Position numbers and translations under genes: made by a program. From the IMG/VR virus record IMGVR_UViG_3300042566_001780, positions 186,001 through 250,000 of that record: a stretch of DNA of 64,000 nucleotides; one strand, given 5' to 3'. The notes beneath the pieces were generated by a model, which saw nothing but the letters and a program-made list of their open reading frames with translations, had not been told where the DNA came from and did no database searches. Of this stretch, positions 4,206-44,486 are shown in pieces; position 1 is the stretch's first letter, and each line of letters begins with the position of its first letter.

Positions 4206-4664
4206 ATGCAAACACGATTTATTAATCCATTAGATGAATTATTCGAAATAGACCCTAGTTGCAGAAAAATAGAAGATACTACTGATCGTGATGATACTGA
4301 TTATGAAGTAGCTGAAGTCCAAAGTCAACCTGTTGAAGTAGTCAAAGATGAAGAAGATATTGACACTGATCAAAAAATAGATGCAGTATATGATGCAGCG
4401 CTCGAAGCTTACCAAAATCAAACTGCTATGGTTGAATTGCTTGAGCCACGATATGCTGCACGTAATGCAGAGGTGGCAGCTACTTATTTGAATATTGCTT
4501 TACAGGCAGTTACTTCAAAAGCTCGTGTAAAGAATGATAGAAAACGGGTTGGACAGTTTATCCCGGGGGCATCCAATAAAATCACGAATAATACTATTGT
4601 TGCATCCCGGGAAGAAATTCTTAGAATGATTTCAGTTGATGCTGAGACTAAGAAATTATCTTAG
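4206..4664 (+). CDS. Putative terminase small subunit (gp16-like)
   Basis: 152 aa, acidic N-terminus, helical core EPRYAARNAEVAATYL, C-terminal ITNNTIVASREEIL resembling the gp16 layout. Confidence 0.5.
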   Translation: MQTRFINPLDELFEIDPSCRKIEDTTDRDDTDYEVAEVQSQPVEVVKDEEDIDTDQKIDAVYDAALEAYQNQTAMVELLEPRYAARNAEVAATYLNIALQAVTSKARVKNDRKRVGQFIPGASNKITNNTIVASREEILRMISVDAETKKLS

Positions 4665-5842
4665 TAAGTTAGATTAATGTAACCTTCTACATCAATTCCA
4701 TTATTTTCTAATTCTGCTTTTATTTCTGCAGCGCTCTTACCAGCAACTGAGGAATCAAATGGATTTGAGGTTATCAAAACATTCCCGCCGATGTAAGAGG
4801 CAATGCCTGCAAGATTCTTCAACTTATTATTTCTTGCTGAGAAAGAAGCGCCAACATGTTTTGGGGAACCTTTAAGCGACGTTAATTGATTGTTGTCGCT
4901 GTTGAATTGTCTCCCAACAAATCTCGGTCCACCCTCAAGATTTTCTAATTTGTTGTTTTGACAACTGAAGTCTGAACCAACATCCTTCACACATCCTGCT
5001 AAGCTCGTTAGTTTATTTCCACTTAAATCTACAGAACCGCCAACTTCTCTAGGCATTTTTCCAAGTGACATTAGTTTGCAATTCATAGCTGCATAGTTTG
5101 CTCCTACGTACTGTGGGGCAAATTCTAAGGTCTTAAGATTATTTCTTGAGCAATTGAATGAACCTTCAACATGATAAGGACAACCTTCTAAAGAATCCAA
5201 GAATAGATTGCCTTGAATTCTAAAAGATCCACCTATTTTGCCAAATCTGACCGGAATTTTCTTAAGTTTCTTGAATGATAGATCGACGTCACTAGATACG
5301 TCAACAGTCAAATCGTCATTAACAGTGTAGTTGCTAATTTTGTACTTTTTCAATCGCGCAACAACTTCTTCCTTCGAATTAGGAAAATCATTATCATTTT
5401 CTGGCGTATACACCTTTGTGACTAACTTGCCTAATTGTTTGAAAGCAGCATCGTAGATATTGACCAAAATGTCAACTGGAGCGTCGCCCACAATAGAAGG
5501 CTTTGGACTCTTCATCTTGTATGGAGTATCAGATGAAGTACCACGAATTTGACCATTTGCGTAGACAATATAGAAGTCTTTCCATGGACCTAGCCCAAAA
5601 CCGGGTTTTGCAAAGTAAAAAGATCCTCTAACAGCAGCTAGAGGACCTGTCTTATCATAAGCAGAAATGGCTTTGTATGAATCTAAGTCTTTTGCTTTTT
5701 CAATAGCAGCTTTAACGTCAGCTTTTGAAGCACCTATATTCTTGAGCCAAACATTGGTTTTTCCTCGTAGATGCTTTGCTTTATCATCATACCGAATGAA
5801 TTGCTCTAGATCTTTATTTTCAAATAATTGTGCCAACTTCAT
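4661..5842 (-). CDS. Leucine-rich-repeat protein (~22-aa repeats) with an extra N-terminal domain and an MKLAQLFE leader
   Basis: Repeats such as GSFNCSRNNLKTLEFAPQYVG and SDFSCQNNKLENLEGGPRFVG. Confidence 0.7.
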   Translation of the reverse strand: MKLAQLFENKDLEQFIRYDDKAKHLRGKTNVWLKNIGASKADVKAAIEKAKDLDSYKAISAYDKTGPLAAVRGSFYFAKPGFGLGPWKDFYIVYANGQIRGTSSDTPYKMKSPKPSIVGDAPVDILVNIYDAAFKQLGKLVTKVYTPENDNDFPNSKEEVVARLKKYKISNYTVNDDLTVDVSSDVDLSFKKLKKIPVRFGKIGGSFRIQGNLFLDSLEGCPYHVEGSFNCSRNNLKTLEFAPQYVGANYAAMNCKLMSLGKMPREVGGSVDLSGNKLTSLAGCVKDVGSDFSCQNNKLENLEGGPRFVGRQFNSDNNQLTSLKGSPKHVGASFSARNNKLKNLAGIASYIGGNVLITSNPFDSSVAGKSAAEIKAELENNGIDVEGYINLTY

Positions 5843-5865
5843 AGATTTTCCTTTTGAATTTGAAT

Positions 5866-5873
5866 CTATTTAG
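5866..5873 (-). promoter_or_regulatory. Late-promoter-like box CTAAATAG
   Basis: About 24 bp upstream of the 5842 start. Confidence 0.65.
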
Positions 5874-6472
5874 ACGACTTCTTCAAAATTCTCGGCAATT
5901 TGTTTGATATACGAATGCGCTCTAGAGTTTGGTGGAATAAAGTTGCCCAAATACTCCGCTTGCACTGGAAGAATCTTACGCGTCTTCAAAATCAATGCTT
6001 CTGCTCTATTTGGGATATATGGAGCATATAGCAATTGCATACCGGCTTCTTCAAGAAACAAAGAATCCTTCTTGTTGTTATCATACTTGCACGCAGTTAC
6101 CACGTTCATCCAGGTATCTTTTCCACCACGAGACACGGGAATAATATGATCGCGAGACAACTTGTAAGACGGGAATGAATGGCCACAATAAGCGCAAGTA
6201 TAGTTGTCCCGAGCAAACAACTCTTTATTTGTCAGCAATGGGATTTTGTTGCGCTTATATGCATGCGATTCACCACGAATAGCAATAATCGGGGCTGTCT
6301 CAATTTTAGATTGAAGACCACTGATTCGGTTAAGACCACCACGAAAACGAACAAAGTCGGGCTCGCCGAGTTGCCATGCCACCAAGTCTTTAGCATGGTA
6401 GACAATAGCATCTTCATAAGTGCCCCAGTGCAATGGATTACCTTGTTGGTCTAGAATCAAAATCGTGTTCAT
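5870..6472 (-). CDS. HNH endonuclease (McrA/HNH_5-like)
   Basis: LFARDNYTCAYCG...DHIIPVSRGGKDTWMNVVTAC..NNKK. Confidence 0.85.
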   Translation of the reverse strand: MNTILILDQQGNPLHWGTYEDAIVYHAKDLVAWQLGEPDFVRFRGGLNRISGLQSKIETAPIIAIRGESHAYKRNKIPLLTNKELFARDNYTCAYCGHSFPSYKLSRDHIIPVSRGGKDTWMNVVTACKYDNNKKDSLFLEEAGMQLLYAPYIPNRAEALILKTRKILPVQAEYLGNFIPPNSRAHSYIKQIAENFEEVV

Positions 6473-6473
6473 T

Positions 6474-6932
6474 TCATTCTTCCTTAGTTTTGAGCAAATC
6501 TTCTAATTGTTTAACATATTTTTGATGATCTCTTCGACCATCTTTTAAAAACTCTTCACAACTCATCCAAACAGTGTATTCTGTTTCAGAACACCATTTA
6601 TCAAAATTCCATCTATCAATTATCCTAGCAGCATATACAGTCAAGTCATATGTGCCAGATCGCAAGACTACTCTTTCATGTGCCAGTAAAAACGGTGTCT
6701 CTGCAAGATTATATGCTACTAACCCAAGTTCTTCCTCAGCTTCTCTAACAGCGCACCCAAAAGCATCTTCATCTTCTTCAATTTTACCTTTGCTAAGCAT
6801 AGGGCGAGGACCACCCAACTTTGGGTTAGAACTCACCATCATCAGATACTTGTAAGATCCATCTTCATCCTTCAGATAAGGAATTAACCCTGCTCTAGCA
6901 CGCTTCTCATACTGTAATTCATCATGTTCCAT
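6474..6932 (-). CDS. Nudix hydrolase
   Basis: Nudix box GKIEEDEDAFGCAVREAEEELG. Confidence 0.85.
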   Translation of the reverse strand: MEHDELQYEKRARAGLIPYLKDEDGSYKYLMMVSSNPKLGGPRPMLSKGKIEEDEDAFGCAVREAEEELGLVAYNLAETPFLLAHERVVLRSGTYDLTVYAARIIDRWNFDKWCSETEYTVWMSCEEFLKDGRRDHQKYVKQLEDLLKTKEE

Positions 6933-6953
6933 TAAAAACCTCTCGTGACAAAA

Positions 6954-7067: not shown

Positions 7068-7101
7068 GATTATCAACTTATTTCTATTTAGTATCTATTT
7101 A

Positions 7102-8325
7102 GTGTCTCAAGAATCTTTCATCCGTCAAAATTACCGTATCTATCCGACTAAGGAGCAAGCTGCTTACCTTAATCAAGATATGGGAAATCAACGTTTCATC
7201 TGGAATTACTTTCTAGCAAAGTCGATTGAGCTGTATGAGTTGGAAAAGAAGTTCTGCTTCTTTTTTGAGATGGCTAAGATCTTAACTGATCTAAAGAAAG
7301 ACGAGAACTTTGCATTCCTGAAACTTGGTAATAGTCAAGGTTTACAGATGACTTGTAGAACTTTAGATATCGCACTAAGAGGTTCATTCAAGTCGACAAA
7401 AAATAAGACTAGGAAGGGCTTCCCAAAATTCAAAAAGAAGACAGGAAGCGGATCAGTGACATATCCACAAGGTGTCAAATTGGCGGATGGCAAGTTGCGA
7501 ATTCCAAAATTAGATACTACCATCAAAATCAAAGATAATGGAATGTGTCTTCCTGAAGATTACAATTCAGTCACCATTACTAGATCTGCATCTGGTAAGT
7601 TCTATGCTTCGTTTGTAGTACCTTTTCAGATTCCAGACAAAGTTCAAATCAATGCTGATTCGAAAGCAGTTGGTATTGATTTGAACTCTCAACATATCAT
7701 GGTACTTGATGACGGGTCAGCAGTCGTTAATCCAAAACATCTCCTTGAAAAAGAAAAGAGATTGAAGAGATATCAGCGAGCTTTCTCAAGAAAGCAGAAG
7801 GGATCTGCTAATAAAAATAAAGCTCGTGTTAAACTTGCAAAGTTACATGAAAAAGTAGCAAATTCGCGTAAAGATTTTGATGAAAAACTCACATTGGATG
7901 TCATCAAAAATAACGATATTATCATCATTGAAGATCTTAATGTGAAATCTATGCAGAAGTGGAATGGGCGGATGGTACAATCTGCTCCATTTGGAGCAAT
8001 TCGTTCGAAATTAACTTGGAAAGCCAACAAGTTAGGTAAACATCTAGTTATAATAAACAGGTACACCCCAACCAGTAAGGTTTGTTCCGAATGTGGGCAG
8101 ATACATGAGTTGGATCTGAAGACTAGATGGCTAAGTTGTGATTGTGGAGCTCAGCTCCACAGAGACCATAATGCAGCTATTAACATCCTAAATGCAGGAT
8201 TAAGAAATATTGAGGCGGGGACCGCCTTTCAAGCTTGTGGAGAGACTAAGGTTCATGATCTCGGTAATGAGATTAGGTGGGTCTCGTTGAAGCAAGAAAA
8301 TACACGATCTTTAGTCGTGTATTAG
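7102..8325 (+). CDS. tnpB: RNA-guided endonuclease TnpB
   Basis: N-terminal YRIYPT HTH; RuvC-I VGIDLN, RuvC-II IIIEDLN, Zn ribbon CSECG..CDCG, RuvC-III HRDHNAAINI. Confidence 0.95.
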   Translation: MSQESFIRQNYRIYPTKEQAAYLNQDMGNQRFIWNYFLAKSIELYELEKKFCFFFEMAKILTDLKKDENFAFLKLGNSQGLQMTCRTLDIALRGSFKSTKNKTRKGFPKFKKKTGSGSVTYPQGVKLADGKLRIPKLDTTIKIKDNGMCLPEDYNSVTITRSASGKFYASFVVPFQIPDKVQINADSKAVGIDLNSQHIMVLDDGSAVVNPKHLLEKEKRLKRYQRAFSRKQKGSANKNKARVKLAKLHEKVANSRKDFDEKLTLDVIKNNDIIIIEDLNVKSMQKWNGRMVQSAPFGAIRSKLTWKANKLGKHLVIINRYTPTSKVCSECGQIHELDLKTRWLSCDCGAQLHRDHNAAINILNAGLRNIEAGTAFQACGETKVHDLGNEIRWVSLKQENTRSLVVY

Positions 8326-8350: not shown

Positions 8351-8357
8351 TGTTAGA

Positions 8358-8365
8358 CTATTTAG
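8358..8365 (-). promoter_or_regulatory. Late-promoter-like box CTAAATAG pointing into the IS right end
   Basis: Motif match just after the stop of 8375..9034. Confidence 0.5.
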
Positions 8366-8374
8366 CTTTGAAAA

Positions 8375-9034
8375 TCAGTCAACATTTTTTGCAAAGATTG
8401 TATTCGCTAGTTTTATGCTTTCAAACTTTATATTTTCAACCTCTAATTCTGACATTTTTCTGCTTATCCCTAAAGTAACATATCCTTTAAATGAACCATA
8501 ATACGGCGGCAGCGCAACCCGACATATCACTGGTACCAACGATTTTCCTTCTGGGGAAAGCTTCATATTCAAAGTTTCTTCATACGGATGGCACGCAAAC
8601 TTGCTATTCATCAATTCAACAATTTGTTTATTTTCAATTTCACTAGATGTAAACAATAAATGAGACTTTCCATGTTCATTTACCGATTTCTCATAGAGAA
8701 TATTGCCCATGATTGAATCAGTATAAAAGAAAAAGGTTTCTCTTTGATTAATTGAAATGTTTGTATTAACGACAGCAGCAAATACAATAAGACTGTTTTT
8801 ATCAACCAGATTTTTAATAGCAGTTTTTAGTTCTTGATTTAGTTCAATCTCTTTAACATTTGGAATAGGCGTTTTTATTTTTGGGTCTACATCTAATAGA
8901 AAAGATCTTTGTTCAAATAATGTTATGGAAATTATGAGCGCAGCAGAGAATAGTGCTAATAACAAAACACGTGTAAACGATATCCATGTGAGAATTTTGC
9001 CCAATAATGGAAGGACTTTTTTGAGTAGGTCCAT
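8375..9034 (-). CDS. Holin-T-like membrane protein, paralog 2
   Basis: One N-terminal TM segment and a GAF-like C-domain with two Cys; CRVALPPYYGSFKGYVTLGISR. Start moved to ATG 9034 (AGGGAG RBS). Confidence 0.45.
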   Translation of the reverse strand: MDLLKKVLPLLGKILTWISFTRVLLLALFSAALIISITLFEQRSFLLDVDPKIKTPIPNVKEIELNQELKTAIKNLVDKNSLIVFAAVVNTNISINQRETFFFYTDSIMGNILYEKSVNEHGKSHLLFTSSEIENKQIVELMNSKFACHPYEETLNMKLSPEGKSLVPVICRVALPPYYGSFKGYVTLGISRKMSELEVENIKFESIKLANTIFAKNVD

Positions 9035-9056
9035 TGATTGCTCCCTTATTACCAAG

Positions 9057-9063
9057 TATTTAG
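9057..9063 (-). promoter_or_regulatory. Late-promoter-like box CTAAATA
   Basis: Upstream of ATG 9034. Confidence 0.6.
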
Positions 9064-9083
9064 AGAGCAGGTTGAAAACCGGG

Positions 9084-9734
9084 CTATTTTTGCTTCGTAA
9101 TGTCTCTTAAATAAATTTCCACCGCTAATCGAGAAGCTTCTAATTTAAGAGAATCTTTTTCCATGACATCTGGCATTCTAGATAATCCAAATGTCAAAAT
9201 ACCTACAAATCTTCCGTAAAATGGTGGTATTGCTAACTTGCAAATGACTGGGGTATTTTGAGAATATTTTTCGTAAATTGAATTTTTAGCAGAAGAGCAA
9301 ACAAATTCATTTCCAAGAACCGATACCATTTTATTGGTATTTTCTTGGTTAGCATCAAATACTTGATATGGTAATATTGATGCTGGGTCTGGTAACTGAA
9401 TATTGGTATCAATGTCAGCAAACCAGTATTTTATTTCTTGTCGGTTTAGTTGAAGATCAACTGAATTGACTGCTACTAATTTAACTAATTGGCTATTTGA
9501 AGATAGAGTAACAAGCTCAATAGCTGATTCTTCACTAACTTGCCAATTTGAACTTGCTGATTCTTTACTTCCATGCTGGACAATGTATTTGAAAATATCT
9601 TCACGATTTTCATATCCAACATAAAGTGTAGAAATAAAAATGCCAGAAAGCAGTGTAGCTAGAATTTTTTTGATAGTCAATTTATCTGAAATATCAAAAA
9701 TTATCTTGAGCCAATCAGTAGGTTTTGCAGCCAT
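9084..9734 (-). CDS. Holin-T-like membrane protein, paralog 1
   Basis: One TM segment and two Cys; CKLAIPPFYGRFVGILTFGLSR; paralog of 8375..9034. Confidence 0.45.
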   Translation of the reverse strand: MAAKPTDWLKIIFDISDKLTIKKILATLLSGIFISTLYVGYENREDIFKYIVQHGSKESASSNWQVSEESAIELVTLSSNSQLVKLVAVNSVDLQLNRQEIKYWFADIDTNIQLPDPASILPYQVFDANQENTNKMVSVLGNEFVCSSAKNSIYEKYSQNTPVICKLAIPPFYGRFVGILTFGLSRMPDVMEKDSLKLEASRLAVEIYLRDITKQK

Positions 9735-9763: not shown

Positions 9764-9771
9764 CTATTTAG
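9764..9771 (-). promoter_or_regulatory. Late-promoter-like box CTAAATAG
   Basis: About 30 bp upstream of 9734. Confidence 0.65.
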
Positions 9772-9804: not shown

Positions 9805-10473
9805 TTAGTCAGAAAAAGGATCAATTATGACAGGAACATTACCCCGAAGCATGACATTTTCGGGATTAATGTCATTGCCTTGATGATTTAACATCAGATT
9901 AAAAACCAATTCAAAGAATTTTTCGTTTTTGATGATAGCATCCCTAATAGATTCCATAGCATCTTCATCATCTTTGTCAATGTCGCTAGTTGAGGGAATT
10001 GGCAAAGATAATACATAATCAGCTTTATCTTCAATTGATCCTAATAATAATTTGTCTTTGTCTAATTCCTCATTAGACATACCAATAATTTGAATGGCAT
10101 CTGAAAGACTAGAAATTCCATTAACATTTAGCGGCTTTAGCTTCTCTAACTTAACAAATTTGATAGTTGTGTCTTGCACTGGTTTTGCAAATTTTACTTT
10201 TTCTACTCTAACCTTGCTTAAAATTTTTGGAAAATGTTCATTGGGGTTATTTTGCACGAAATCTAAAAATCTTTCATACCCAGGATCTTTTTCCCAAACC
10301 CTCCAAACATAATTGTTTGATGGCTTAATGTCAAAAACCTTAGCATTCATACCGTCCTTAGCAGACACTTTTCTACTGGTTTCAGCATAACGAGAGACAA
10401 AATTAGCTAACTCAGTCTGGTATTTTATGTCTTCACCGCCACCTCTGAATAACAAAATTTCTAATAATTTCAT
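9805..10473 (-). CDS. Protein-kinase-like (PKL/APH fold) protein with an MKLLE leader
   Basis: DGMNAKVF (Gly loop), PNEHFPKI, catalytic DINPENVM, metal-binding IIDP. Confidence 0.65.
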   Translation of the reverse strand: MKLLEILLFRGGGEDIKYQTELANFVSRYAETSRKVSAKDGMNAKVFDIKPSNNYVWRVWEKDPGYERFLDFVQNNPNEHFPKILSKVRVEKVKFAKPVQDTTIKFVKLEKLKPLNVNGISSLSDAIQIIGMSNEELDKDKLLLGSIEDKADYVLSLPIPSTSDIDKDDEDAMESIRDAIIKNEKFFELVFNLMLNHQGNDINPENVMLRGNVPVIIDPFSD

Positions 10474-10943
10474 TTTAGATCCGAATAAATTCTGCCACCA
10501 ACATTGCCAATACCATCAAGAGATTCTAATTGATTGCGCCGACACCAAAAATCTTGGCCAACTTCTTTTGGCGCGCCATCTAAAGATTTTAAATTATTGT
10601 TACTGCAATCAAAACCACCATTAATCTCTCTAGGAGCACCCTTAAGAGAGGTTAATTGGTTGCTGAAGCACGTAAAATCGCGGCCAACTTCTCTAGGAGC
10701 AAATTTAAGAGAAGTCAATTGATTATCACTACAATAAAAGCTTCCACTAACTTCCCAAAATTTGACAGGGATGAAACTTAATCTTTTTCTGCTTAAATCA
10801 ACATCGCCATCAACATCTACCATAAGATTATCTCTTATGGTGTAGTTTCTGATATTCATTTTTTGCAACCATGCCTCAATTTCTTCTCTAGTCCGGAGAA
10901 ATTGATTACTGTCGTTTTCAAGTAGTTGTCTTAGTAGTTTCAT
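10470..10943 (-). CDS. Short leucine-rich-repeat protein with an MKLLRQLLE leader
   Basis: GSFYCSDNQLTSLKFAPREVG-type repeats; paralog of the C-terminal half of 4661..5842. Confidence 0.7.
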   Translation of the reverse strand: MKLLRQLLENDSNQFLRTREEIEAWLQKMNIRNYTIRDNLMVDVDGDVDLSRKRLSFIPVKFWEVSGSFYCSDNQLTSLKFAPREVGRDFTCFSNQLTSLKGAPREINGGFDCSNNNLKSLDGAPKEVGQDFWCRRNQLESLDGIGNVGGRIYSDLK

Positions 10944-10994: not shown

Positions 10995-12818
10995 TCACTT
11001 CAACTTCATAGATTCGTCTTCAATTGACATTTTGTTATCAGTCGATGGCCATGCATAGATGTAATTACCAGCATGATCTTGTACTAACAAGAAGGTGTAG
11101 TTAGCAAAAGTGTAAACCTTCATTTCAGCTTTATAGCCAGGAATACGCTCGCTAAACTCCATTGAGGCATCAGTACTCTTAGTACCAAATTTCACTAAGA
11201 AATTAGCAACTGCATTGATTTCCGCAGATGTATTTGGACCCATACCACCTAAACTTGCAATGACTTGAATATCTTCAATCTTAGTAGAGGTGAATGGAGA
11301 AAACACTTGACGACCAATAGCGCGAATACCAGCACTCATATAACCGGGTAGATTCTTAACCATGTGCCAATCAGGATTTTGCATGCCTGCTACTTTCAGC
11401 GCATTACCCATAATAGCAGGAAGATTTGCCGGTTTTGGCTTAGTCACATCATATTGTGGCACTGATACATCGGTAGACGGCTCAGGAATCTCATCAGTAA
11501 GACCACTCAAATCCATATTCATAAAGTAAAGAATAGATTGACGATCTAATTGAACACCCTTCATAGCATCATCAGTTTGACCTTTTGATGCTTGATTAAG
11601 CTTCATTGCTTTTTCTTGCCAACCATCCTTCTTATCAGCCTTTTCATCATCTTTGCGAAGGCCTGGCAACTTATCATTACGATCACCAAAGTTCATATTT
11701 GAAAATGATGACTTGAATGATTGTTTAGTCTTAGTTGGCTTCGGCTGATCATCTTCATCATCTACGACTTCAAAATTTTCATCAAGTTTTGCTTTGGATA
11801 AGTCCGGACTGTCCAAGCCAATAAAACGATAATCTGAAGAACCATATCCAGATGACACGAATTTCATCTTATTGTCTTTGATAAATTCGACAATCTTTTT
11901 ATGGAATTCTGGTTTAATAGGACCATTCTTTGGACCTTTTAATTGCTTGATGGTCTTTTCATCTGATGATAATTCAAATGTAGCTACCGGTAAACCTTCC
12001 TCATCTTGGACGGATAAAATAACAACAGACTTATTATTGACTTGGGAACCATAGGTAGCAACGCAATGCCCCATTGTCTTGCCTTCGCAATCAGTATAAG
12101 AAGAATTCAGCGCGCGAACAATTCTAGAGCCATCTGGGAATTTCTTAACGACTTCAAAATCAGTTCCTTCCTTAAGGCCACGATACATTTGCTTGGACTG
12201 TTCTTTTGAAAGTTTATCTTTTTGACGTTCTAAATACACGTGATAGGAATATGCATTTTCAATAGCATCCACAGGAGAAAGCTTCGTAAGATCACGAACA
12301 AAATAATTATCAGGCATCAACTGATAATTGCGCTCTTCTTGATTGATAGCAACAGCATTTAAATAGTCGATTAGTTCACCTGTGAGTTTTTGTGTGACTG
12401 ATGGTAAGCGAGTTAATCTGCGGCCACCGGCAAAAATCATAGCATTTTCTCTATCATTGCGTATGTATTCTGGGAAGGCAGCCACAATTTCTTCTTCTGA
12501 CATATCGTCAAATTCGTCTTGAAGATCTTCGAGAACCTCAGTGAACTTAGGATATAATGCACTACGGAACTTCTTTTCAGGTGTAAAGCTATTGTGATCA
12601 TCGTAGCCCTTTGCTTCATTCTTTAACCAATTTTTGAAGTTGCCATTGAACCAAGCTATGACTTTCTCTTGACTGGTGCGGGTCTTTACGCTCTTTGTAA
12701 GATATGCTTCGAAGATAGAATTAAAGCTAGCAAGATTTTCAATCACTCGCCCATCTTTATCTTTCAAGTTGATGTCTACGTTACCACCGTTTGCAAAGTT
12801 TGCTTCGAATAAATACAT
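10995..12818 (-). CDS. PcfJ-domain protein fused to a conserved phage C-terminal domain
   Basis: EGKTMGHCVATY...VATFEL...IKQLKGPKN (PcfJ-like); C-terminal PDWHMVKNLPGY domain. Start MYLFEA after a GGAG RBS. Confidence 0.6.
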   Translation of the reverse strand: MYLFEANFANGGNVDINLKDKDGRVIENLASFNSIFEAYLTKSVKTRTSQEKVIAWFNGNFKNWLKNEAKGYDDHNSFTPEKKFRSALYPKFTEVLEDLQDEFDDMSEEEIVAAFPEYIRNDRENAMIFAGGRRLTRLPSVTQKLTGELIDYLNAVAINQEERNYQLMPDNYFVRDLTKLSPVDAIENAYSYHVYLERQKDKLSKEQSKQMYRGLKEGTDFEVVKKFPDGSRIVRALNSSYTDCEGKTMGHCVATYGSQVNNKSVVILSVQDEEGLPVATFELSSDEKTIKQLKGPKNGPIKPEFHKKIVEFIKDNKMKFVSSGYGSSDYRFIGLDSPDLSKAKLDENFEVVDDEDDQPKPTKTKQSFKSSFSNMNFGDRNDKLPGLRKDDEKADKKDGWQEKAMKLNQASKGQTDDAMKGVQLDRQSILYFMNMDLSGLTDEIPEPSTDVSVPQYDVTKPKPANLPAIMGNALKVAGMQNPDWHMVKNLPGYMSAGIRAIGRQVFSPFTSTKIEDIQVIASLGGMGPNTSAEINAVANFLVKFGTKSTDASMEFSERIPGYKAEMKVYTFANYTFLLVQDHAGNYIYAWPSTDNKMSIEDESMKLK

Positions 12819-12848: not shown

Positions 12849-12856
12849 CTATTTAG
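12849..12856 (-). promoter_or_regulatory. Late-promoter-like box CTAAATAG
   Basis: About 30 bp upstream of 12818. Confidence 0.65.
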
Positions 12857-13340: not shown

Positions 13341-13542
13341 TCTAACAACTCTGCATCAACAACTCATTACCCTTCATGCTAAAGGCATGTTTGGGGATCC
13401 AAATGATCAACTTATTCTTGATGCCTTCGACGAATTTGTTGATCTTGTGGCCGAAAGTAGTGTACAATCAATCAACATCACGCCAATGCAAAAGATCATG
13501 GGTCAGATGTTCATCCAAATGATTGAAGAGAACTATTCATGA
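13315..13542 (+). CDS. Hypothetical protein
   Basis: 75-aa ORF coupled to its neighbours. Confidence 0.5.
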   Translation: MSKKMLPHNLTTLHQQLITLHAKGMFGDPNDQLILDAFDEFVDLVAESSVQSINITPMQKIMGQMFIQMIEENYS

Positions 13543-14174
13543 AACCGAATTTTGACAAGCTTTTGATTTCTGCACGTTACTGGATTTTGGGGATGGCTCA
13601 GAATGACGAGTCTTACTACAAAGTCTCAGAAGCTCTGGAATTTGCGCTCATCCACCACAACGGCAAACGAAATGGTGGTGATCACGAGTTCATTCACCAG
13701 CTTGGGATTTTTCATAATCTCCGCACTCTCCACCGGCACATTGAAAATCCAGTAAATGTCTACATTCTTGCTTTTCTTCATGATGTAGTTGAAGACAAGA
13801 ATGTACCACTTGAAGAAATCGCTCGTCGTTTTGGGACTGAAATTGCTCAAAAAGTTGATCTTCTGAGCAAGGAAGTTCTTGGCAAAAAGAAAGATAACTA
13901 TTCTTTGAATGCTGCATTTGCAGATGTCGACGCTTCGATTGTCAAAATTGCAGATCGTATCAACAATGTCTCGTCAATGGTTGGTGTCTTTAAACAAGCC
14001 CGGCTTCTCCGCTACTACAATGAAACAAATGAAATCTTCTTCCCGCTCATCAAAGAAGCCCGTCGCAACTTCCCGCACCAGGAAGCCATCTACGAAAACT
14101 TCAAGCTCCAACTGGTTAACCAACTCCTACTGGTCGGGCAGCTTCTCAACTTCATGCCCGATGAGCCAAAATAA
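13539..14174 (+). CDS. HD-domain (p)ppGpp-hydrolase-like protein (small alarmone hydrolase family)
   Basis: ALEFALIHHNGKRNGG..FIH, LHDVVED, IVKIADRINN. Confidence 0.75.
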   Translation: MKPNFDKLLISARYWILGMAQNDESYYKVSEALEFALIHHNGKRNGGDHEFIHQLGIFHNLRTLHRHIENPVNVYILAFLHDVVEDKNVPLEEIARRFGTEIAQKVDLLSKEVLGKKKDNYSLNAAFADVDASIVKIADRINNVSSMVGVFKQARLLRYYNETNEIFFPLIKEARRNFPHQEAIYENFKLQLVNQLLLVGQLLNFMPDEPK

Positions 14175-14231
14175 TCATCAATGGAAATTGCCTTATCTTG
14201 GGCCGATGGCCTGGGATAATGGGAGCAATGG

Positions 14232-14768
14232 ATGATCAGGGCCATTGTAGCAGTTGATGCATCTAACGCCATTGGATGGTCTAATGGCGATTTGCCTTGG
14301 AAGATTCCTTATGATCTGAAAAGATTCAAGGAATTGACTAGTGGCTCTACAATAGCCATGGGATCAAACACCTGGAAGTCCCTGAATCGCCCTGAAGGCC
14401 TTCCTAATAGACGCAATGTGGTTATTAGCTCCCAAGAACGAGAGTCTCTGAATGCTTCTGGTGACATCCAGATAATCAAATCTATTGAAGATCTTTCAGA
14501 GCAAAATGATTACTGGGTAATCGGCGGATCTCAAATCTATGGTAGCTTTTTGGCTCTAGATCTAATTGATGAAATGCACATTACATTTGTCCATGAAAGT
14601 TCAAATGCAGATGTCAAATTTCCAGTTGATTTGTACAATTGGAAATTATTCATGATCCAACAAAGATCAATTGGACGCCCCTGGCAACTAGATGATTTGG
14701 TTATCCCGCAGCTTGGGGTTGACGTACCAATACCAATTACAATTTTGACAGTAAGTAGACAACGCTGA
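14232..14768 (+). CDS. frd: Dihydrofolate reductase
   Basis: AIVAVD..NAIG..GDLPWKIPYDLKRFKELT, MGSNTW.SL, LPNRRNVVIS, VIGGSQIY. Confidence 0.95.
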   Translation: MIRAIVAVDASNAIGWSNGDLPWKIPYDLKRFKELTSGSTIAMGSNTWKSLNRPEGLPNRRNVVISSQERESLNASGDIQIIKSIEDLSEQNDYWVIGGSQIYGSFLALDLIDEMHITFVHESSNADVKFPVDLYNWKLFMIQQRSIGRPWQLDDLVIPQLGVDVPIPITILTVSRQR

Positions 14769-15618: not shown

Positions 15619-16128
15619 TCACTTCTTTAGTGCAATTAATCGCACATCATGCTCTTTGGTGATTAAAAGATCATCAGTGTACAGATAATCTAATGAACAC
15701 CAGATCTCATTGTCTTCAATAAAAACTTGTGATGATTGATCAGTTTTCAAATCGAAAGCATAGATGTCAAAGTTATTTTTTCGTATCAATTTAAACCAAA
15801 AAGCTCTGGCAAATTTTGTTTGTGATTTACCAGAGCTTAAGATTAGATGTTGATCAATTACTATTTGATAGAGCTTTTCTGTTATAGATTTTCCTCGAAA
15901 TCCTTTATCAACCCAAACATAATCAACTTCCCAATAGTAGGTATTTTTGGGATTTCGTAGAATCAAAAAACCAATTAATTTTGAATTTGAAAACTTGAAT
16001 GTGACTAAACGTCTTGGATTCAAATAATGAAAGCCATAACTATTCTTTAAATGCTGAATCTTTTTCAATAACCACTTTTTTGCATCTTCAGCATTTGAAA
16101 TAGTAATGGCTCTCTCAAGAATCAACAT
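15619..16128 (-). CDS. GNAT-fold acetyltransferase-like protein
   Basis: EVDYVWVDKGFRGKSITEKLY (motif A), SQTKFARAFW. Confidence 0.65.
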   Translation of the reverse strand: MLILERAITISNAEDAKKWLLKKIQHLKNSYGFHYLNPRRLVTFKFSNSKLIGFLILRNPKNTYYWEVDYVWVDKGFRGKSITEKLYQIVIDQHLILSSGKSQTKFARAFWFKLIRKNNFDIYAFDLKTDQSSQVFIEDNEIWCSLDYLYTDDLLITKEHDVRLIALKK

Positions 16129-25058: not shown

Positions 25059-25060
25059 AA

Positions 25061-26955: not shown

Positions 26956-27665
26956 AATCCATATCTCCTACGAGTAGCTTCGAAGTTTTGTTTGATTTCT
27001 TGTGAGGAGAGCGCGCGGCTATATTCTTTTACAGATGAAATTTGTCCTCCAAATATATCTGTAGCATTAGCATCTAATCTAATACCTATGTATCCTTGGT
27101 TAACAATAGTAGCTTTAGCCGCTTTACCTGTTTTTTCTATTGATAGATTGCCGTTAATATATATTTTTGATATGCTGTTATCTAATGTAGCGGATACGTT
27201 GAACCATTTGTTTGCGGATATTAAACCATTAGCTGTAGCTAAAGTTTCATTTCCATTGTCGGTAGTGAAATACTGAAAATGTATTAGATCTCCTGCTATG
27301 TGAATACCGTGTCTTTGCTGATAGGTGTAAACTGCTAAAGTCGGCGGATTTTGTTGTTGTGTATACAGATATTGTCTAATAGCAATATTAGTTGATACTG
27401 ATGTGGTGTTAAACCACACATCTAAGGTGGTAGATGTACCTCGATTTATTGGTACTACAGAACAGTAATCATTTACTTTATCAAATGTGAAACTACCTTT
27501 GTTATTTGTGTTATACACGGCACCGTTGATCAACGTTCCATCATTTCCACTTTCAGATAAATCTGTCCATAAAGTTCCGTTGCCTGGATAACTTCTTATA
27601 TTCCCTGCATCTAAACAAAGAACTAATCCATCTTCTACAATATTAGGTCCACAATGAGCGCTCAT
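26952..27665 (-). CDS. LamG/ConA-like lectin protein 2
   Basis: DGLVLCLDAGNIRSYPGNG...YSRALSSQEIKQNFEATRRRYGL. Confidence 0.85.
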   Translation of the reverse strand: MSAHCGPNIVEDGLVLCLDAGNIRSYPGNGTLWTDLSESGNDGTLINGAVYNTNNKGSFTFDKVNDYCSVVPINRGTSTTLDVWFNTTSVSTNIAIRQYLYTQQQNPPTLAVYTYQQRHGIHIAGDLIHFQYFTTDNGNETLATANGLISANKWFNVSATLDNSISKIYINGNLSIEKTGKAAKATIVNQGYIGIRLDANATDIFGGQISSVKEYSRALSSQEIKQNFEATRRRYGL

Positions 27666-28351
27666 ATGCCGTATCTTCCCTTAGTCGCTTCAAAGTTTTG
27701 GCGAATTTCTTGGGCAGAAAGCGCACGATTGTAAATTTGAGCTAAAGAAATTTTTCCCGAAAATGTACGATCAATAGCATTAGATCTATTGCCTAGCCGC
27801 AATTCATATAACGTCGTAATAGCACTTGGCAATCCAGTAGTCCCAGTGCTATTAACTACACCGTTTATGTAGATTATTGCACTGCCAGTACTAATAACCG
27901 ATACTGAAACATTAGTCCATTTTGTATATGGCACGGAATTAGCTGTTGAATTAACTGCTGCACCATTGTTTACAGTAATTGTCACATTTGGACTATTGGA
28001 GAAGTAAAAAGATATTCCACCCGCAGACCCAGTGTTATTATTAGTTTTATCAAAAATTCGACCATATCCACCCCCTCCAGCAGAAGCTGGATTAACCCAG
28101 GCAGATAACGTAAAACCATTTGACAAGTAAGAATTATCGGTAAATGTGTGGCAATAATCATCAACACCATCAAAAGTCAAACTACCTTTATTATCACTGC
28201 TATATCCAACACCATTCATTAATGTCCCATTATTTCCATTTCCACTCAAATCTGTCCATACTGTCCCAGATCCGGGGTATGACTTTACATTAGCTGCATC
28301 TAAATGCAGCACTAATCCATCTCTAACAATTGAAGGGTTATAAGCTATCAT
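27662..28351 (-). CDS. LamG/ConA-like lectin protein 1
   Basis: DGLVLHLDAANVKSYPGSG...IYNRALSAQEIRQNFEATKGRYGI. Confidence 0.85.
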   Translation of the reverse strand: MIAYNPSIVRDGLVLHLDAANVKSYPGSGTVWTDLSGNGNNGTLMNGVGYSSDNKGSLTFDGVDDYCHTFTDNSYLSNGFTLSAWVNPASAGGGGYGRIFDKTNNNTGSAGGISFYFSNSPNVTITVNNGAAVNSTANSVPYTKWTNVSVSVISTGSAIIYINGVVNSTGTTGLPSAITTLYELRLGNRSNAIDRTFSGKISLAQIYNRALSAQEIRQNFEATKGRYGI

Positions 28352-30664: not shown

Positions 30665-30672
30665 CTATTTAG
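30665..30672 (-). promoter_or_regulatory. Late-promoter-like box CTAAATAG
   Basis: In the 78-bp divergent spacer, pointing to the collagen gene. Confidence 0.6.
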
Positions 30673-30680
30673 AAAAACCA

Positions 30681-33600
30681 ATGAAACCAACTATAGCAAT
30701 TATTGACATTATTGGGTTAACATATGATGGAAATACTCTTAACTTGCGAGGATTAGGTGGATCAGAATCTGCGGTGATTCTGCTTTCAAAAGAGCTATCT
30801 TTATGCGGGTTTGATGTTACAGTGTTCAATAATTGCATTGATAAACATGCGAGTCCTGGTGTTTATGCCGGTGTCAAATATGTTGATATATCCAAAATAG
30901 ATTCTGTTGAGAAAAATTTTGATATTGTCATCTCTTCGAGGACAGTAATACCTTTTATTACAGAAGATTTGCATCCATATTTCTTCCAGTTCGACCCAGC
31001 GAGATTCAAGCAATTAGCGCAAACAGCCAAATTTAAAGCTGTTTGGATGCATGACACTTTTTGTAAAGGTGATGAATTTCTAGAAAGGCTTCTACTTAAC
31101 GGGTCAATTGACGAGATTTTTACTCTGTCCGATTTCCACACTACATATGTCAGTACCGCAGACCATGGGCATCGCAGAATGCCCGAGGTTCTCAAAAACA
31201 AAATATTTATGACTCGAAATGGAGCCGTAAACTATTTTCCAGAAGTCAACATTTCTAAAAAAGACAGAAACTTATTTGTCTACAATGCATCAGTAACAAA
31301 AGGTATGCTGCCATTGGTCAAAAACATTTGGCCCCTCTTCAAATCGTTAAGACCAAATGCTCGATTAAAAGTGATCGGTGGATATTACCGATTTAGAGAA
31401 AACGCTGCACCTGATGAACAAGAAAAAACCTGGCGAGAACTTGTCAATGATCCGATCTACAAAACTTTGGATGTAGAGTTCACCGGAATTTTGAGGCAAC
31501 AAGAAATAGCAGAAATATTATCATCTGCTTCATTTATGGTTTATCCTGGCGCATTCCCAGAAACCTTTGGTATTTCTACTCTTGAATCTTTACTATACAA
31601 TACTCCACTGATTACGACCCGATTTGGTGCATTAGAAGAAACTGCAATTGATTCTGCATGCTATAAGATTGATTATTGTATTGAGCCTAATGGTTTATTT
31701 CCAAATATTTCTTTAGATGACCAATCTAAGAAGTTTGTTCAATTAATGTTGTCTGCGTATGATAATACATATTTGCACCAACAAAAAATGTATGCTTGCA
31801 ATGCAGTCAAAACTATAGCAGGCTGGGATAGTGTGGCATTGCAATGGAAGCAACATCTTTTTAAGAAGCTTGGTCTGTATTTGCCAGCATCAGATTACCA
31901 AAAAATAACTTCTATTAATGCTGAAGTTAAAGAAGTTTTTGGCAGAAGATTTAGCAATCCAGAAGAAAATTATCTTCCGCGAAATACCCAGCAGCATATA
32001 ACAGTCATTACCCCAGTATTCAACGCCGAGAAATACATAGAGCAATGTGTCCAATCTGTTATTACACAAGATTATGATAATTGGGACATGTACATTATTG
32101 ATGATTGCTCTACTGATTGTACTTCTAAAATTCTAGATGAATTGTCGGAATTAGATTCTCGCATCCATATCATTCATCAAACCTATAATGCCGGTGCGGT
32201 CAAAAATCAGGTAGTTACTATTAAAAAGATATGTTCGCCAGATGACATTATTCTGTTGTTAGATGGCGATGATGCACTTGTGAATGACAATCAAATTTTC
32301 CATTTTTACAACAATCTTTATACTAATGACCAAACTGAATTTACATATGGTTCGTGCTTCTCATTAGTTGATAAAATTCCATTAGTTGCTCAGCCATATC
32401 CAGAAGAAATTAAGAAATCTAAAAGATATCGAGATCATAAGTTCAACTGGAATATGCCATATACACATCTGAGAACCTTTAGAGCAAGATTAATGCTGAA
32501 TATCCCAGATGATAAATTTAAAGATGCGAATGGAAATTGGTATAAAGCTGGTGGTGACAATGCTACTTTTTATGAAGTAATTGAGCGCGCTGATCCAAAT
32601 AAAGTAAAAGCTATTTCTAGGATTAACTATCTCTACAATGACCTAAATCCAATCAATGATTGGAAAGTTAATGGACACGAACAAACAGCTAATGCAAAGT
32701 TTATCGGTAAATCAAATCTCAAATCTATGAAAACTATCTTAATCGCTATCCCAACTGCCAAGTACATTGAACCAGAAACCTTTAAGTCAATTTATGACTT
32801 AGAAGTTCCTGAAGGTTATAGGACTGAGTTTCAGTATTTTTTTGGGTACGCCCTGGAACAGGTACGCAATTTAATATCTGATTGGGCTCAGCGTTACGAT
32901 TATCTTTTTGCTGTAGACTCTGATATGAGCTTCAAACCGGATACATTGAAGCGATTATTGTCTCATGACAAAGATGTTGTCAGTGGGCTATACATCCAGC
33001 GGAAACCAGGTGAGCATATCTTGGAACTTTACCGCAATGGGCATAATATTCCATATGGTGATATTAAAAATCTGGGTCTAGTTGAAATTGATGCATGTGG
33101 ATTTGGTTGTGTATTAGTCAAGTCTAAAGTATTTTCTACCATTGGATATCCACAATTTGTATACAAATCAGCTTTAGATCATAAAGATACCGTATCAGAA
33201 GATGTGTACTTCTGCATGAAAGCAAAGCAATTTGGTTTCTCAATTTATGCAGATACGAATGTCATTTGCGATCATATTGGATCAACGAAATTTGTTGTAG
33301 ATCAAACTATTACTAAAAAGCAATCTGCATTTGATAGGCTTCTTGAATTGAGCAATACACGTTTGCTTCCAAGCAAACATGTTGAATATCTCTATGATAT
33401 GTCAAAGTCCCAGAATATCAAACCAAAAGTCATTTTTGATATAGGAGCATGTGTCCTGCACTGGACTCGAGAAGCGGTGAATGTTTGGCCGGATGCTAAG
33501 TTTTTTGCTTTTGAAGCTATGCAAGAATCAGAGCTTATTTTCAAACATTTTGGTGTCCCGCACTTTATTGGTGTATTAAGCGATCAAGACAATAAGGAAG

Positions 33601-33998
33601 TGAGCTTCTACAAAAATGTCACACACCCAGGCGGAAATTCATATTACCGAGAGAATGACGAGATAGTAAAAAATGCGTCCGCTTATTTCAATGAAGGAAA
33701 CAAAGAAATTCGCAAAACAGTCACTCTTGATACGCTAATGAAATCTGCTAATTTGCCACAACCAGATTTAATCAAGATGGATGTTCAAGGTGCAGAGCTA
33801 GATATTTTGAAAGGCGGTTTGTCTACTTTAACTAAATGTCAAGATGTTATTCTTGAATTGCAAAAAATTGAGTATAACAAAGGAGCTCCATTGAAAGACG
33901 AAGTCATCCAATTTATGCTTGAGCGGGGATTTAAATTAATATCTGGTCCATTCTGTGATAACGGACCAGACGGTGATTATCATTTTTCTAGAATTTAG
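30681..33998 (+). CDS. Four-domain enzyme: GT4 (GT-B) + GT2 + GT2-like + FkbM methyltransferase
   Basis: GLGGSESA and YPGAFPETFGISTLES (GT4); VITPVFNAEKYIEQC and LLDGDD (GT2); YLFAVDSD, GFGCVLVK, SEDVYFC (GT-A); IFDIGA and IKMDVQGAELDILKG (FkbM). Confidence 0.9.
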   Translation: MKPTIAIIDIIGLTYDGNTLNLRGLGGSESAVILLSKELSLCGFDVTVFNNCIDKHASPGVYAGVKYVDISKIDSVEKNFDIVISSRTVIPFITEDLHPYFFQFDPARFKQLAQTAKFKAVWMHDTFCKGDEFLERLLLNGSIDEIFTLSDFHTTYVSTADHGHRRMPEVLKNKIFMTRNGAVNYFPEVNISKKDRNLFVYNASVTKGMLPLVKNIWPLFKSLRPNARLKVIGGYYRFRENAAPDEQEKTWRELVNDPIYKTLDVEFTGILRQQEIAEILSSASFMVYPGAFPETFGISTLESLLYNTPLITTRFGALEETAIDSACYKIDYCIEPNGLFPNISLDDQSKKFVQLMLSAYDNTYLHQQKMYACNAVKTIAGWDSVALQWKQHLFKKLGLYLPASDYQKITSINAEVKEVFGRRFSNPEENYLPRNTQQHITVITPVFNAEKYIEQCVQSVITQDYDNWDMYIIDDCSTDCTSKILDELSELDSRIHIIHQTYNAGAVKNQVVTIKKICSPDDIILLLDGDDALVNDNQIFHFYNNLYTNDQTEFTYGSCFSLVDKIPLVAQPYPEEIKKSKRYRDHKFNWNMPYTHLRTFRARLMLNIPDDKFKDANGNWYKAGGDNATFYEVIERADPNKVKAISRINYLYNDLNPINDWKVNGHEQTANAKFIGKSNLKSMKTILIAIPTAKYIEPETFKSIYDLEVPEGYRTEFQYFFGYALEQVRNLISDWAQRYDYLFAVDSDMSFKPDTLKRLLSHDKDVVSGLYIQRKPGEHILELYRNGHNIPYGDIKNLGLVEIDACGFGCVLVKSKVFSTIGYPQFVYKSALDHKDTVSEDVYFCMKAKQFGFSIYADTNVICDHIGSTKFVVDQTITKKQSAFDRLLELSNTRLLPSKHVEYLYDMSKSQNIKPKVIFDIGACVLHWTREAVNVWPDAKFFAFEAMQESELIFKHFGVPHFIGVLSDQDNKEVSFYKNVTHPGGNSYYRENDEIVKNASAYFNEGNKEIRKTVTLDTLMKSANLPQPDLIKMDVQGAELDILKGGLSTLTKCQDVILELQKIEYNKGAPLKDEVIQFMLERGFKLISGPFCDNGPDGDYHFSRI

Positions 33999-43553: not shown

Positions 43554-43580
43554 ATTGCTAATTCCTTCATCAATCAGTAC

Positions 43581-43588
43581 CTATTTAG
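43581..43588 (-). promoter_or_regulatory. Late-promoter-like box CTAAATAG
   Basis: About 28 bp upstream of 43553. Confidence 0.65.
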
Positions 43589-43601
43589 AAGAAACGTCGT
43601 C

Positions 43602-44486
43602 ATGAAACTTACACTTAAACAATTTCTAACTGAAGGCGGTAAAGCTACTGCTCATTTAGGTACGTCTCGAGCTTCGCAATCTGATATTCAGGAAGCTCTT
43701 AAAGTATTGGCTCCAATAATGGATACAACACCAGATAAGTTGAAAGAGCACATTCTTGGCTCTGGTCGATTGACTTTGGTGGGAAAGCAAAAAGATTCTG
43801 GGGATCTTGATATTGCAGTCATATCTAAAGACCCGGAATCTTTAGTGAGTGACATCTCAAAAGTGGTGAAGTCTGAACCACGAAAGATAGGTTCATCTAC
43901 TTATTCTTTTGCCGTACCTGTACTTGGTTCAAAAAAGATTCAAGTAGACATTATGTTTGTACCAAGTCTTGATTGGGCAGCATTTTCTCACTATGCCTCA
44001 GAAGATTCAAAGCATAAAAGTGGGGTTCGAAATGAACTATTGCATGCTACATTGAAGCATTCTGCAGAACCCGGAAAAGACTTGATATTACGAGATAAAG
44101 ATGGCAACTTGATCGTTCGAGTTAGCCGATCTTACGATTTGATCAATGGTGTCAAACGTGTTTTTAAAATTGCCAAGAAACGTAAAGACGGTAAAGGTCG
44201 CGTCAAAGGACTTGACCACGTAAGCCCTGAAGAAGTTGAGAGCACGCTGAAAGAACTTGGAATAGTTGATCAATTCAGCAAAGAAGCTGACATAATTCTT
44301 GATCCAAAGAGATTTGCAGAAATGTTATTTGGACGCAATACTCAAATAGCAGATCTTGGAAGCACAGAGAGTTTGATAAAACTAATATCTGCCAGAAAAG
44401 ATAAAAATGAAATCTTTAAGGATGCAGTATCTGGAATAAAAGATCGGGGATTTGTTGTCCCCGATGAGTTAAAACAATTTAGTTAA
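43602..44486 (+). CDS. Pol-beta-superfamily nucleotidyltransferase with an MKLTLKQFLTE leader
   Basis: ILGSG...SGDLDIAV and third-carboxylate strand IQVDIMF. Confidence 0.7.
   Translation: MKLTLKQFLTEGGKATAHLGTSRASQSDIQEALKVLAPIMDTTPDKLKEHILGSGRLTLVGKQKDSGDLDIAVISKDPESLVSDISKVVKSEPRKIGSSTYSFAVPVLGSKKIQVDIMFVPSLDWAAFSHYASEDSKHKSGVRNELLHATLKHSAEPGKDLILRDKDGNLIVRVSRSYDLINGVKRVFKIAKKRKDGKGRVKGLDHVSPEEVESTLKELGIVDQFSKEADIILDPKRFAEMLFGRNTQIADLGSTESLIKLISARKDKNEIFKDAVSGIKDRGFVVPDELKQFS

Follow-up and report, generated by a model that had tools for sequence, protein, structure and literature searches.

Short N-terminal leaders that end in a hydrophobic residue, a variable residue and glutamate occur on about 25 proteins of a jumbo bacteriophage and, to judge from their form and distribution, are probably capsid-targeting propeptides of the kind known from phage T4, which would direct proteins into the head and be cleaved off there. 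The leaders were encountered in a 64-kb stretch of DNA, here called the window, which represents bases 186001-250000 of a single IMG/VR virus contig (IMGVR_UViG_3300042566_001780; 291,687 bp, 40% GC). In the window they are carried by leucine-rich repeat (LRR) proteins, a PcfJ fusion, a nucleotidyltransferase (NTase) and a kinase-fold protein; most leader-bearing genes lie outside it. Packaging of these proteins into the head is plausible. Their cleavage and injection, and any function as effectors, are inferred, and an injected-effector function is less certain than packaging and cleavage. Positions marked "genome" follow the numbering of the whole contig, for which 370 genes were called and 91,473 residues scanned for motifs, and positions marked "window" that of the 64-kb stretch.

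Among the genes of the contig are those for a gp23-type major capsid protein (PF07068, E value 2e-89) and, at genome 70256-70864, for a gp21-type (Peptidase S77) prohead protease (PF03420, E value 5.6e-28 at 70265-70729). The genes of the head module are ordered portal, protease, small protein, scaffold, capsid. The capsid protein is nearest to those of the jumbo myoviruses RsoM2USA (Ralstonia phage, 53%) and 121Q/PBECO4 (Escherichia coli phage, 40%), and other near relatives are Stenotrophomonas phage CM1/RAS14 and Xanthomonas phages Xoo-sp13 and XacN1; megablast of the window against isolate phages gave no match. Judged by its head genes, the virus is a distant jumbo relative of T4, and as it possesses a gp21-type protease, it is legitimate to ask about processing of the gp21 type. 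Three whole related records, chosen via homologues of the NTase, served for comparison: G001 (311 kb, 45% GC), G002 (332 kb, 54% GC) and G003 (343 kb, 57% GC, with terminal repeats).

Forms and frequency of the leader

An earlier note on this DNA had drawn attention to six similar N-termini in the window: MKLAQLFE (5842, minus strand), MKLLE (10473, minus), MKLLRQLLE (10943, minus), MYLFE (12818, minus), MLILE (16128, minus) and MKLTLKQFLTE (43602, plus). All six were found at these places. The feature by which the note had united them, an L/I-x-E close to the start, is no distinguishing mark: [LI]xE is present within the first 14 residues in 81 of the 370 genes, and about 10 of the approximately 45 genes in the interval considered by the note are expected to match by chance. 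With 22% of genes matching, this marker was dropped.

Three stricter forms can be recognized: type A, M-K-L-x-x-L-[F/L]-E, of 8 residues; type B, M-x-T-F-K-Q-F-L-x-E, of 10 residues; and the longer type C, M-I-L-R-E-L-L-x-L-x-E. In the whole contig the pattern M[KR][LIV]xx[LF][LFY]E starts 12 genes, as compared with 0.03 expected (P ~1e-27). The core of this pattern, [KR][LIV]xx[LF][LFY]E, occurs 19 times among all residues scanned, 12 of these occurrences being at residue 2, and in 13 genes the last residue of [LF][LFY]E is precisely residue 8, versus 0-3 genes at neighbouring positions. The loose motif has modest peaks of its own: 11 genes have its end at residue 5 and 22 have it at residue 8, on a background of 4.9 per position.

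The leader-bearing set includes a 13-member LRR family, the Pol-beta-fold NTase, the kinase-fold protein, the PcfJ fusion, an AAA ATPase, an amidoligase and a GNAT-like protein, and GH19, amidoligase and AAA domains are among those detected in it. The earlier description of the proteins as unrelated holds in part. The two LRR proteins of the window are paralogues of each other, and the GNAT acetyltransferase has a leader-bearing paralogue; leaders are nevertheless found also on families without detectable homology. Type A is present on proteins without detectable LRR similarity (genome 5872, 180553, 288926 and 166791, the second of them GNAT-like), and other forms of the leader start the NTase, the AAA ATPase (genome 261837) and the proteins at genome 61817 and 158804, again without detectable LRR similarity.

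Codons of the leader vary between copies within the genome and the DNA upstream is not shared, and therefore the constraint acts on the peptide. Many leader genes are internal to operons, their start codon overlapping the stop codon of the gene before. Type A starts recur in the related genomes, in 17 genes of G003 (0.03 expected), 3 of G002 and 1 of G001, and in G003, at 57% GC, they are spelled with GC-rich codons. Counted over all four genomes, the unrelated families with a leader number at least 30. Orthologues have the hydrophobic-x-E junction directly before the conserved mature part, with leaders of varying type and length. Junctions in the 166791 family thus read LFE↓ARNPKL, ILAE↓ARQPDL and QLAE↓SRQSDF in different genomes, those of the AAA family FLVE↓EQFSSDD, FLAE↓AQFSDDD and YLVE↓ATVNDDN, and those of the amidoligases MITFKEYLLE↓K and MISFKQFLAE↓K, with MKLSE↓AKM in the present genome (arrows mark the predicted junction). 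The leaders also lie outside the protein fold in both AlphaFold2 (AF2) models, those of the NTase and the kinase-fold protein, where the per-residue confidence score (pLDDT) of the leader is below 50.

Similar starts were noticed in two unrelated IMG/VR contigs (L023, 548-892; L024, 1803-2090 and 3786-4571), which encode small proteins beginning with MKLKQLFEN; one of the two contigs also encodes a cytidylyltransferase-like protein starting with MTKTFKQYLIEE. Given these examples, leader-like starts may be widespread in T4-like phages.

The nucleotidyltransferase

Comparison of homologues strongly supports a leader on the predicted Pol-beta-fold NTase, a protein of 294 residues (window 43602-44486, plus strand) whose leader MKLTLKQFLTE (43602-43634) would be cut before GGKAT. 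We found 157 homologues; the metagenomic phage contigs that encode them are as long as 343 kb. Their commonest start is MITFKQFL-x-E followed by GGKAT. Variants include MLLKELLLE↓GGKAT, MKLYELLCE↓GGKAT and doubled leaders such as MITFKTFLTEHFLLE↓GGKAT, which keep L-x-E beside the mature start. Junction statistics were taken from the 110 homologues with a GGxAT start. All 110 have Glu at P1; at P3, 106 have Leu, 3 have Ile and 1 has Met; 14 different residues occupy P2, and the modal length of the leader is 10. With Leu or Ile at P3, a free P2 and Glu at P1, the junction matches the published gp21 rule.

The mature part has the features of a Pol-beta-fold NTase, namely G-[GS], D-x-[DE] about 13 residues further on and a third carboxylate, and this catalytic pattern (G53-S54, D68, D70, D116) is invariant in 30 sequences. 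Its AF2 model has a pLDDT of 92, and residues 1-9 are the sole low-confidence stretch, below 50. Foldseek gave a probability of 1.0 to Pol lambda and Pol beta, yet with template modelling (TM) scores of only 0.31-0.38. The protein had no match in Pfam, a profile search of PDB by sequence returned nothing, tblastn against isolate phages gave one weak match only, and its profile did not match RsoM2USA or XacN1. In all four genomes the gene occupies the same place, on the plus strand and wedged among minus-strand tail-fibre genes.

The LRR family

The first LRR-family protein of the window (4661-5842, minus strand; 393 residues) was examined through its N-terminus, its paralogue family and their alignment. 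It begins with the canonical type A leader MKLAQLFE (codons at 5819-5842) and has its own late box; together with its family membership, this makes the leader well supported. The second (10470-10943, minus; 157 residues) carries a type A variant of nine residues, MKLLRQLLE (10917-10943), a form found also at genome 75025, 75558 and 288926. Its leader is well supported too. The gene stands behind a terminator-like hairpin, without a late box of its own, and its expression by read-through past the hairpin is only putative.

Both proteins belong to a family of 13-16 paralogues, which was recovered by clustering with the first 12-14 residues removed. Thirteen of its members bear leaders, and the family holds most type A copies of this genome. 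In its alignment conservation is highest over the leader and lowest over the ~10 residues that follow. The leader gene 166791 is followed by an array of five paralogues (genome 167384-171615), and further ones are located just after the capsid gene and at genome 257-262 kb. LRR models recognise tandem repeats of 22-23 residues of the L-x-x-L-x-x-N-x-L kind. Neither copy in the window reaches the Pfam cutoff, and the paralogue at 167384 scores 32.6 bits versus a cutoff of 27; repeats are visible in the sequence.

In one leader-bearing paralogue (genome 170116-171615, locus L018) the LRR part is fused to a C-terminal GH19 (chitinase/lysozyme; muramidase) domain. Through this common domain a separate GH19 protein of 205 residues (genome 111443-112060), which may be the endolysin, clusters with the fusion.

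The PcfJ fusion

The PcfJ fusion (window 10995-12818, minus strand; 607 residues) consists of two modules behind the minimal leader MYLFE (12804-12818). The PcfJ domain covers residues 197-310 (PF14284, E value 3.9e-11, 43.4 bits versus a cutoff of 25). Homologues of the N-terminal module share a fixed start, (A/S/G)N[FI][AV]NGG, which follows leaders as different as MYLFE, MEYLFE, MILTE, MITFKDFLLLE, MKLLLELLTPLFE and MKMLAELLFE. As varied leaders precede one fixed start, MYLFE is to be regarded as the minimal member of a leader series, and by this comparison a leader on the PcfJ fusion is well supported.

The C-terminal module (residues ~350-607; window 10995-12050, ~260 residues) represents an uncharacterised family with 1318 relatives by HMMER search, marked by the motifs PEWH-x-VKNLPGY and F-x-LVKDFAG-x-YIYSWP. 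A PDB profile search by sequence returned nothing for this module, nor did searches of Pfam and the protein atlas. Its stand-alone homologues have a leader-like start in 59 of 85 cases, often followed by a TKTK-rich linker, and the module also recurs in multi-domain proteins of great length, up to 1372 residues. Polyvalent and PcfJ-type proteins have been proposed to be delivered together with phage or plasmid DNA. The present fusion resembles them in that it bears a leader and that its C-terminal module recurs in long multi-domain proteins; it differs in having two modules only and in the proposed route, which is a leader of the capsid-targeting type and the phage head.

Late promoters and timing of expression

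The late-promoter boxes that the earlier note had placed before the first LRR gene and the PcfJ cluster are real, as is the hairpin it had seen between the PcfJ fusion and the second LRR gene. The box CTAAATAG is located at window 5866-5873 (minus strand), 31 nt upstream of the LRR start, and at 12849-12856 (minus), 38 nt upstream of the start of the PcfJ fusion; the terminator-like hairpin (10989-10963, minus) has a 12-bp stem with 5 GC pairs and a T-rich tail. The window contains 10 copies of CTAAATAG, compared with 2.5 expected. Besides the two mentioned, they are found at 1570-1577, 9764-9771, 30665-30672, 43581-43588 and 46780-46787, and around a TnpB gene at 7084-7091, 7095-7102 and 8358-8365 (minus). 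The copy at 43581-43588 (minus) serves a minus-strand fibre gene of 1543 codons and not the NTase. The whole genome has 42 copies, mostly 30-60 nt before start codons and often after a GC-rich hairpin; they precede the protease, scaffold, giant structural and fibre genes, and from this position before structural genes we infer that CTAAATAG is the late promoter.

Strict leader genes belong mostly to transcription units behind this box, 17 of 19 as against 125 of the 351 other genes (odds ratio 15, P 3e-6); the two outside are the NTase gene and genome 257232. The earlier note had asked for a genome-wide count of the motif against non-late genes. Such a count favours its reading for the strict leaders, which are mostly late, and not for the loose motif, which is at chance.

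The T4-type sequence TATAAATA was considered as a late promoter and rejected, with only 16 copies, mostly before genes of mobile elements. It lies 27-42 nt upstream of genes for TnpB, an IS607-like recombinase, GIY-YIG and other homing endonucleases (for example at window 7060), as if mobile elements brought their own TATAAATA promoter. The TnpB gene of the window (7102-8325, plus strand; OrfB_IS605/Cas12f-like TNB) is located between late boxes and appears to separate the late promoter from the downstream NUDIX-HNH-LRR genes; a second TnpB gene, with an IS607-type partner gene, is present at genome 258683-260548 beside leader-bearing LRR genes. In the related genomes CTAAATAG, GTAAATAG or CTAAATAT are used, even at 57% GC.

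Comparison with known systems

The capsid-targeting sequence (CTS) of T4, MKTYQEFIAE, is cut once (PMC8442874) and suffices to package foreign proteins (PMC8442874; PMC3012670). Suppressor analysis assigned targeting to its residues 4 and 7 and processing to residues 8 and 10 (PMC9026906). As in the internal proteins IPI-III and Alt of T4, a short N-terminal peptide ending with (L/I)-x-E is found here on otherwise unrelated proteins, and the genome encodes, as T4 does, a gp21-type S77 protease, a scaffold and a gp23-type capsid protein. Type B has the same length as the T4 CTS and keeps all four mapped positions (F4, F7, L8, E10); type A is partly alike, with hydrophobic residues at 3, 6 and 7 and Glu at 8. 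T4 Alt loses only six residues by a cut at ITE-6 (PMC5694885), to which the short leader forms correspond, and even very short leaders of 5-6 residues therefore have a precedent. The differences from T4 are of several kinds. The commonest leader is shorter here, the 8-residue MKLxxL[F/L]E; the predicted cargo is encoded by about 25 genes instead of a handful; LRR arrays and enzymes of the sort found here are not known as T4 head contents; CTAAATAG takes the place of TATAAATA as late promoter; and the leaders described here are known from sequence alone.

In phiKZ and SPN3US many head-internal proteins are cut after Glu by the gp21-related proteases gp175 and gp245, respectively, and their propeptides are thought to be prohead-targeting (PMC5694885). 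Those propeptides are mostly 80-130 residues long, carry the motif S/A/G-x-E and are processed by proteases of family S80, whereas the present leaders comprise 5-12 residues and have an aliphatic P3 as in T4.

Leaders similar to the CTS occur on variable proteins in other T-even phages (Repoila et al. 1994, as cited in PMC9026906). So far as that citation describes them, these polymorphic internal proteins are likewise a variable set sharing the leader only, which suggests an evolvable loading route; they differ in being small basic proteins of close T4 relatives, whereas the set described here is from uncultivated jumbo phages and includes large multi-domain cargoes and a big LRR expansion. 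The CTS principle as such is known; its reach into the jumbo clade and the size of the set appear to be undescribed in the searchable literature.

A cultured relative, RsoM2USA, carries the same leaders. Its open reading frames (ORFs) 61, 89, 90, 254, 255, 258 and 385 have type B leaders, and ORF87 and ORF88 short MKL-type starts. ORF89 (MKTFKQFLSE) aligns from residue 1 with an LRR paralogue of the present genome (E value 1e-8), having type B where the latter has type A. The ten major virion bands of RsoM2USA, separated by sodium dodecyl sulfate polyacrylamide gel electrophoresis and analysed by liquid chromatography with tandem mass spectrometry, include ORF89 (28.57 kDa) and its neighbour ORF86, in assignments worded as "most likely correspond" (PMC8504454), and the band sizes predicted in that paper agree with the GenBank ORFs.

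Proposed mechanism and its weak points

We propose that the leaders act as T4-type capsid-targeting propeptides in the following way. Cargo genes would be transcribed from the late promoters. The leader, amphipathic with hydrophobic residues spaced i and i+3, would dock each protein onto the scaffolding core of the prohead, around which the capsid shell closes. The gp21-type S77 protease would then cut after the Glu of (L/I/F)-x-E and free the mature protein inside the head, from which it could later leave together with the DNA. The earlier note had likewise supposed T4-style leaders cut by a gp21-type protease. The S77 protease, the likeness of type B to the T4 CTS, the (L/I)-x-E junction of the NTase, the late position of leader genes and the reported virion band of a homologue support this; L/I-x-E alone, on which the note had relied, does not discriminate. 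The kit for host takeover or anti-defence that the note envisaged is conjectural. That a portable code of 8-10 residues extends from T4 to a large, mostly uncultivated jumbo clade, and that it marks about 25 head-packaged and probably injected proteins in this phage, most prominently the expanded LRR family, may be true as well, and is put forward more tentatively. If so, the pre-made cargo would be far larger and far more varied than that known for any T4-like phage.

The cautious wording of the RsoM2USA band assignments is one of several points that weigh against this proposal. In the present phage the leaders are read from sequence, and presence in virions is reported for a homologue in one relative. 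Neither leader pattern was seen in XacN1, so the code does not hold throughout the clade. Independent events are fewer than the genes counted, type A copies in this genome being mostly paralogues. No late box precedes the NTase gene, either here or in G001. The exact box CTAAATA[GA] gave no late enrichment of leader genes in G001-G003; the relaxed form [CG]TAAATA, with which leader genes are enriched in all four genomes (odds ratios 4.5, 6.1 and 6.8 in the relatives), was chosen post hoc, after inspection of G003, where GTAAATAG and CTAAATAT boxes stand before structural genes. The complex predicted for the protease and residues 1-30 of an LRR protein scored 0.00, which is neither support nor counter-evidence.

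The nature of the cargoes belongs to the same list. They are 156-607 residues long and not basic, their median isoelectric point (pI) being 5.8 as compared with 5.9 for other genes; the idea that they are basic like the T4 internal proteins was accordingly rejected. Unlike IPI-III, which are small and highly basic, they are therefore not homologues of internal proteins and at most cargo of the Alt type.

Finally, one of the six N-termini should probably be removed from the set. The GNAT acetyltransferase (window 15619-16128, minus strand; 169 residues; Pfam Acetyltransf_1, 26 bits versus a cutoff of 20.7) contains FRGKSI, corresponding to the R/Q-x-x-G-x-G/A motif. Its MLILE (16114-16128), counted as a leader in the earlier note, is invariant down to 33% identity, with MFFLE in the G002 homologue. 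Alignments with weak GNAT matches in PDB are offset by ~3 residues only, and the protein therefore lacks an N-terminal extension. MLILE reads as strand β1, followed by helix α1; it is probably part of the fold, and a role as leader is rather unlikely. The paralogue at genome 180553 has a canonical leader, MRLKELFE.

The kinase-fold protein

A leader is moderately supported for the kinase-fold protein (window 9805-10473, minus strand; 222 residues), which starts with MKLLE (10459-10473) and whose start overlaps the stop of the LRR gene. Across homologues of 23-93% identity (alignment A2), M1, E5, E67, D201, N206 and D218 are invariant and residues 6-20 are not conserved. The AF2 model has a pLDDT of 79, with residues 1-15 below 50. 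The best Foldseek matches are to the aminoglycoside phosphotransferase APH(2'')-Ia (probability ~1, TM ~0.32). The protein-kinase-like/APH fold is marked by a D-x4-N in the catalytic loop, a metal-binding Asp, a Lys in strand β3 and a Glu in helix C; most members of the present family have Arg at the β3 position, and the chain ends just after the metal-binding Asp. A search for related loci with this protein alone gave nothing. The earlier assignment of a leader gains from the invariant M1 and E5 and the low-confidence start, and loses from the fact that the family keeps only M-x-[LI]-x-E-[LI], often with Gly at the position of the type A Glu: relatives start with MKLQELAG, MRLDELAG, MKIQELLG or MLLSEL.

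Alternative explanations

The leaders might direct proteins into the prohead and yet many of the cargoes be core or scaffold filler like T4 gp67 and gp68, which is degraded and expelled at maturation or kept as head structure instead of being delivered as enzymes. Several leader proteins are indeed acidic, low-complexity or coiled (genome 43897, with a pI of 4.4; 158804; 61817), some have several L-x-E sites near the start (61817), and some of the genes are located in or beside the head module. T4 gp21 chops core proteins into fragments (PMC5694885), and ORF89 of RsoM2USA is abundant enough for a Coomassie band. Filler would, however, hardly be expected to retain GH19, amidoligase and AAA domains, or the catalytic residues of the NTase (G-S...D-x-D...D) and the kinase-fold protein (D...N...D). 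We thus regard this explanation as unlikely for the set as a whole, and some of the acidic, low-complexity leader proteins may nevertheless be core filler.

Still less probable is that the leader is a signal for a function outside the head, such as recognition by a chaperone, addressing to another part of the virion or stability, and stays uncut by the prohead protease. Conservation and modularity prove that a function exists, not which one; the kinase family, with its M-x-[LI]-x-E-L and frequent Gly in place of the type A Glu, the NTase, which is not visibly late, and the non-basic cargoes would all suit such a signal. It would leave unexplained why the junction follows the exact gp21 rule, why type B equals the T4 CTS at the four mapped positions and why doubled leaders retain L-x-E next to the mature start, and it fits poorly with leader genes being late and a homologue being reported in virions.

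That there is no signal at all, the starts having arisen through chance, paralogy, mobile 5' DNA cassettes or translational selection on the first codons, is disfavoured as very improbable: the loose motif is at chance level, type A copies here are mostly on LRR paralogues and Lys is generally common as second residue, but the strict motif is enriched at its position ~400-fold over the internal rate, the peptide persists from 40% to 57% GC with varying synonymous codons, upstream DNA is unshared and many leader genes start within operons at overlapping stop and start codons, families without detectable homology carry leaders, and leader types are exchanged between orthologues.

If the leaders act like the T4 CTS, the head-internal proteome of jumbo T4 relatives would become predictable from sequence, metagenomes included, and candidate injected enzymes and LRR binders could be selected for studies of phage-host conflict. 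More phages would then come under the CTS principle, by which foreign proteins have already been loaded into T4 heads. As cultured RsoM2USA carries the same leaders, the prediction is directly testable.

Neighbouring genes

The leader genes of the window are surrounded by genes for an HNH endonuclease, a NUDIX hydrolase, an HD-domain protein and a dihydrofolate reductase (5870-6932, minus strand; 13539-14768, plus). Directly downstream of the kinase-fold gene are two adjoining paralogues of 216-226 residues without family match (8375-9734, minus), with a separate late box at 9764-9771. Between fibre genes (23841-28351, minus) lie five paralogues in tandem, 225-406 residues in length, which share the N-terminus G-L-[IV]-L-x-L-D-A-A-N-x-K-S; one of them has a weak match to a sialidase N-terminal (lectin-like) domain. 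On the strand opposite to the surrounding tail-fibre cluster, a gene at 30681-33998 (plus) encodes a protein of 1105 residues that combines glycosyltransferase family 1, glycosyltransferase family 2 and FkbM methyltransferase domains.

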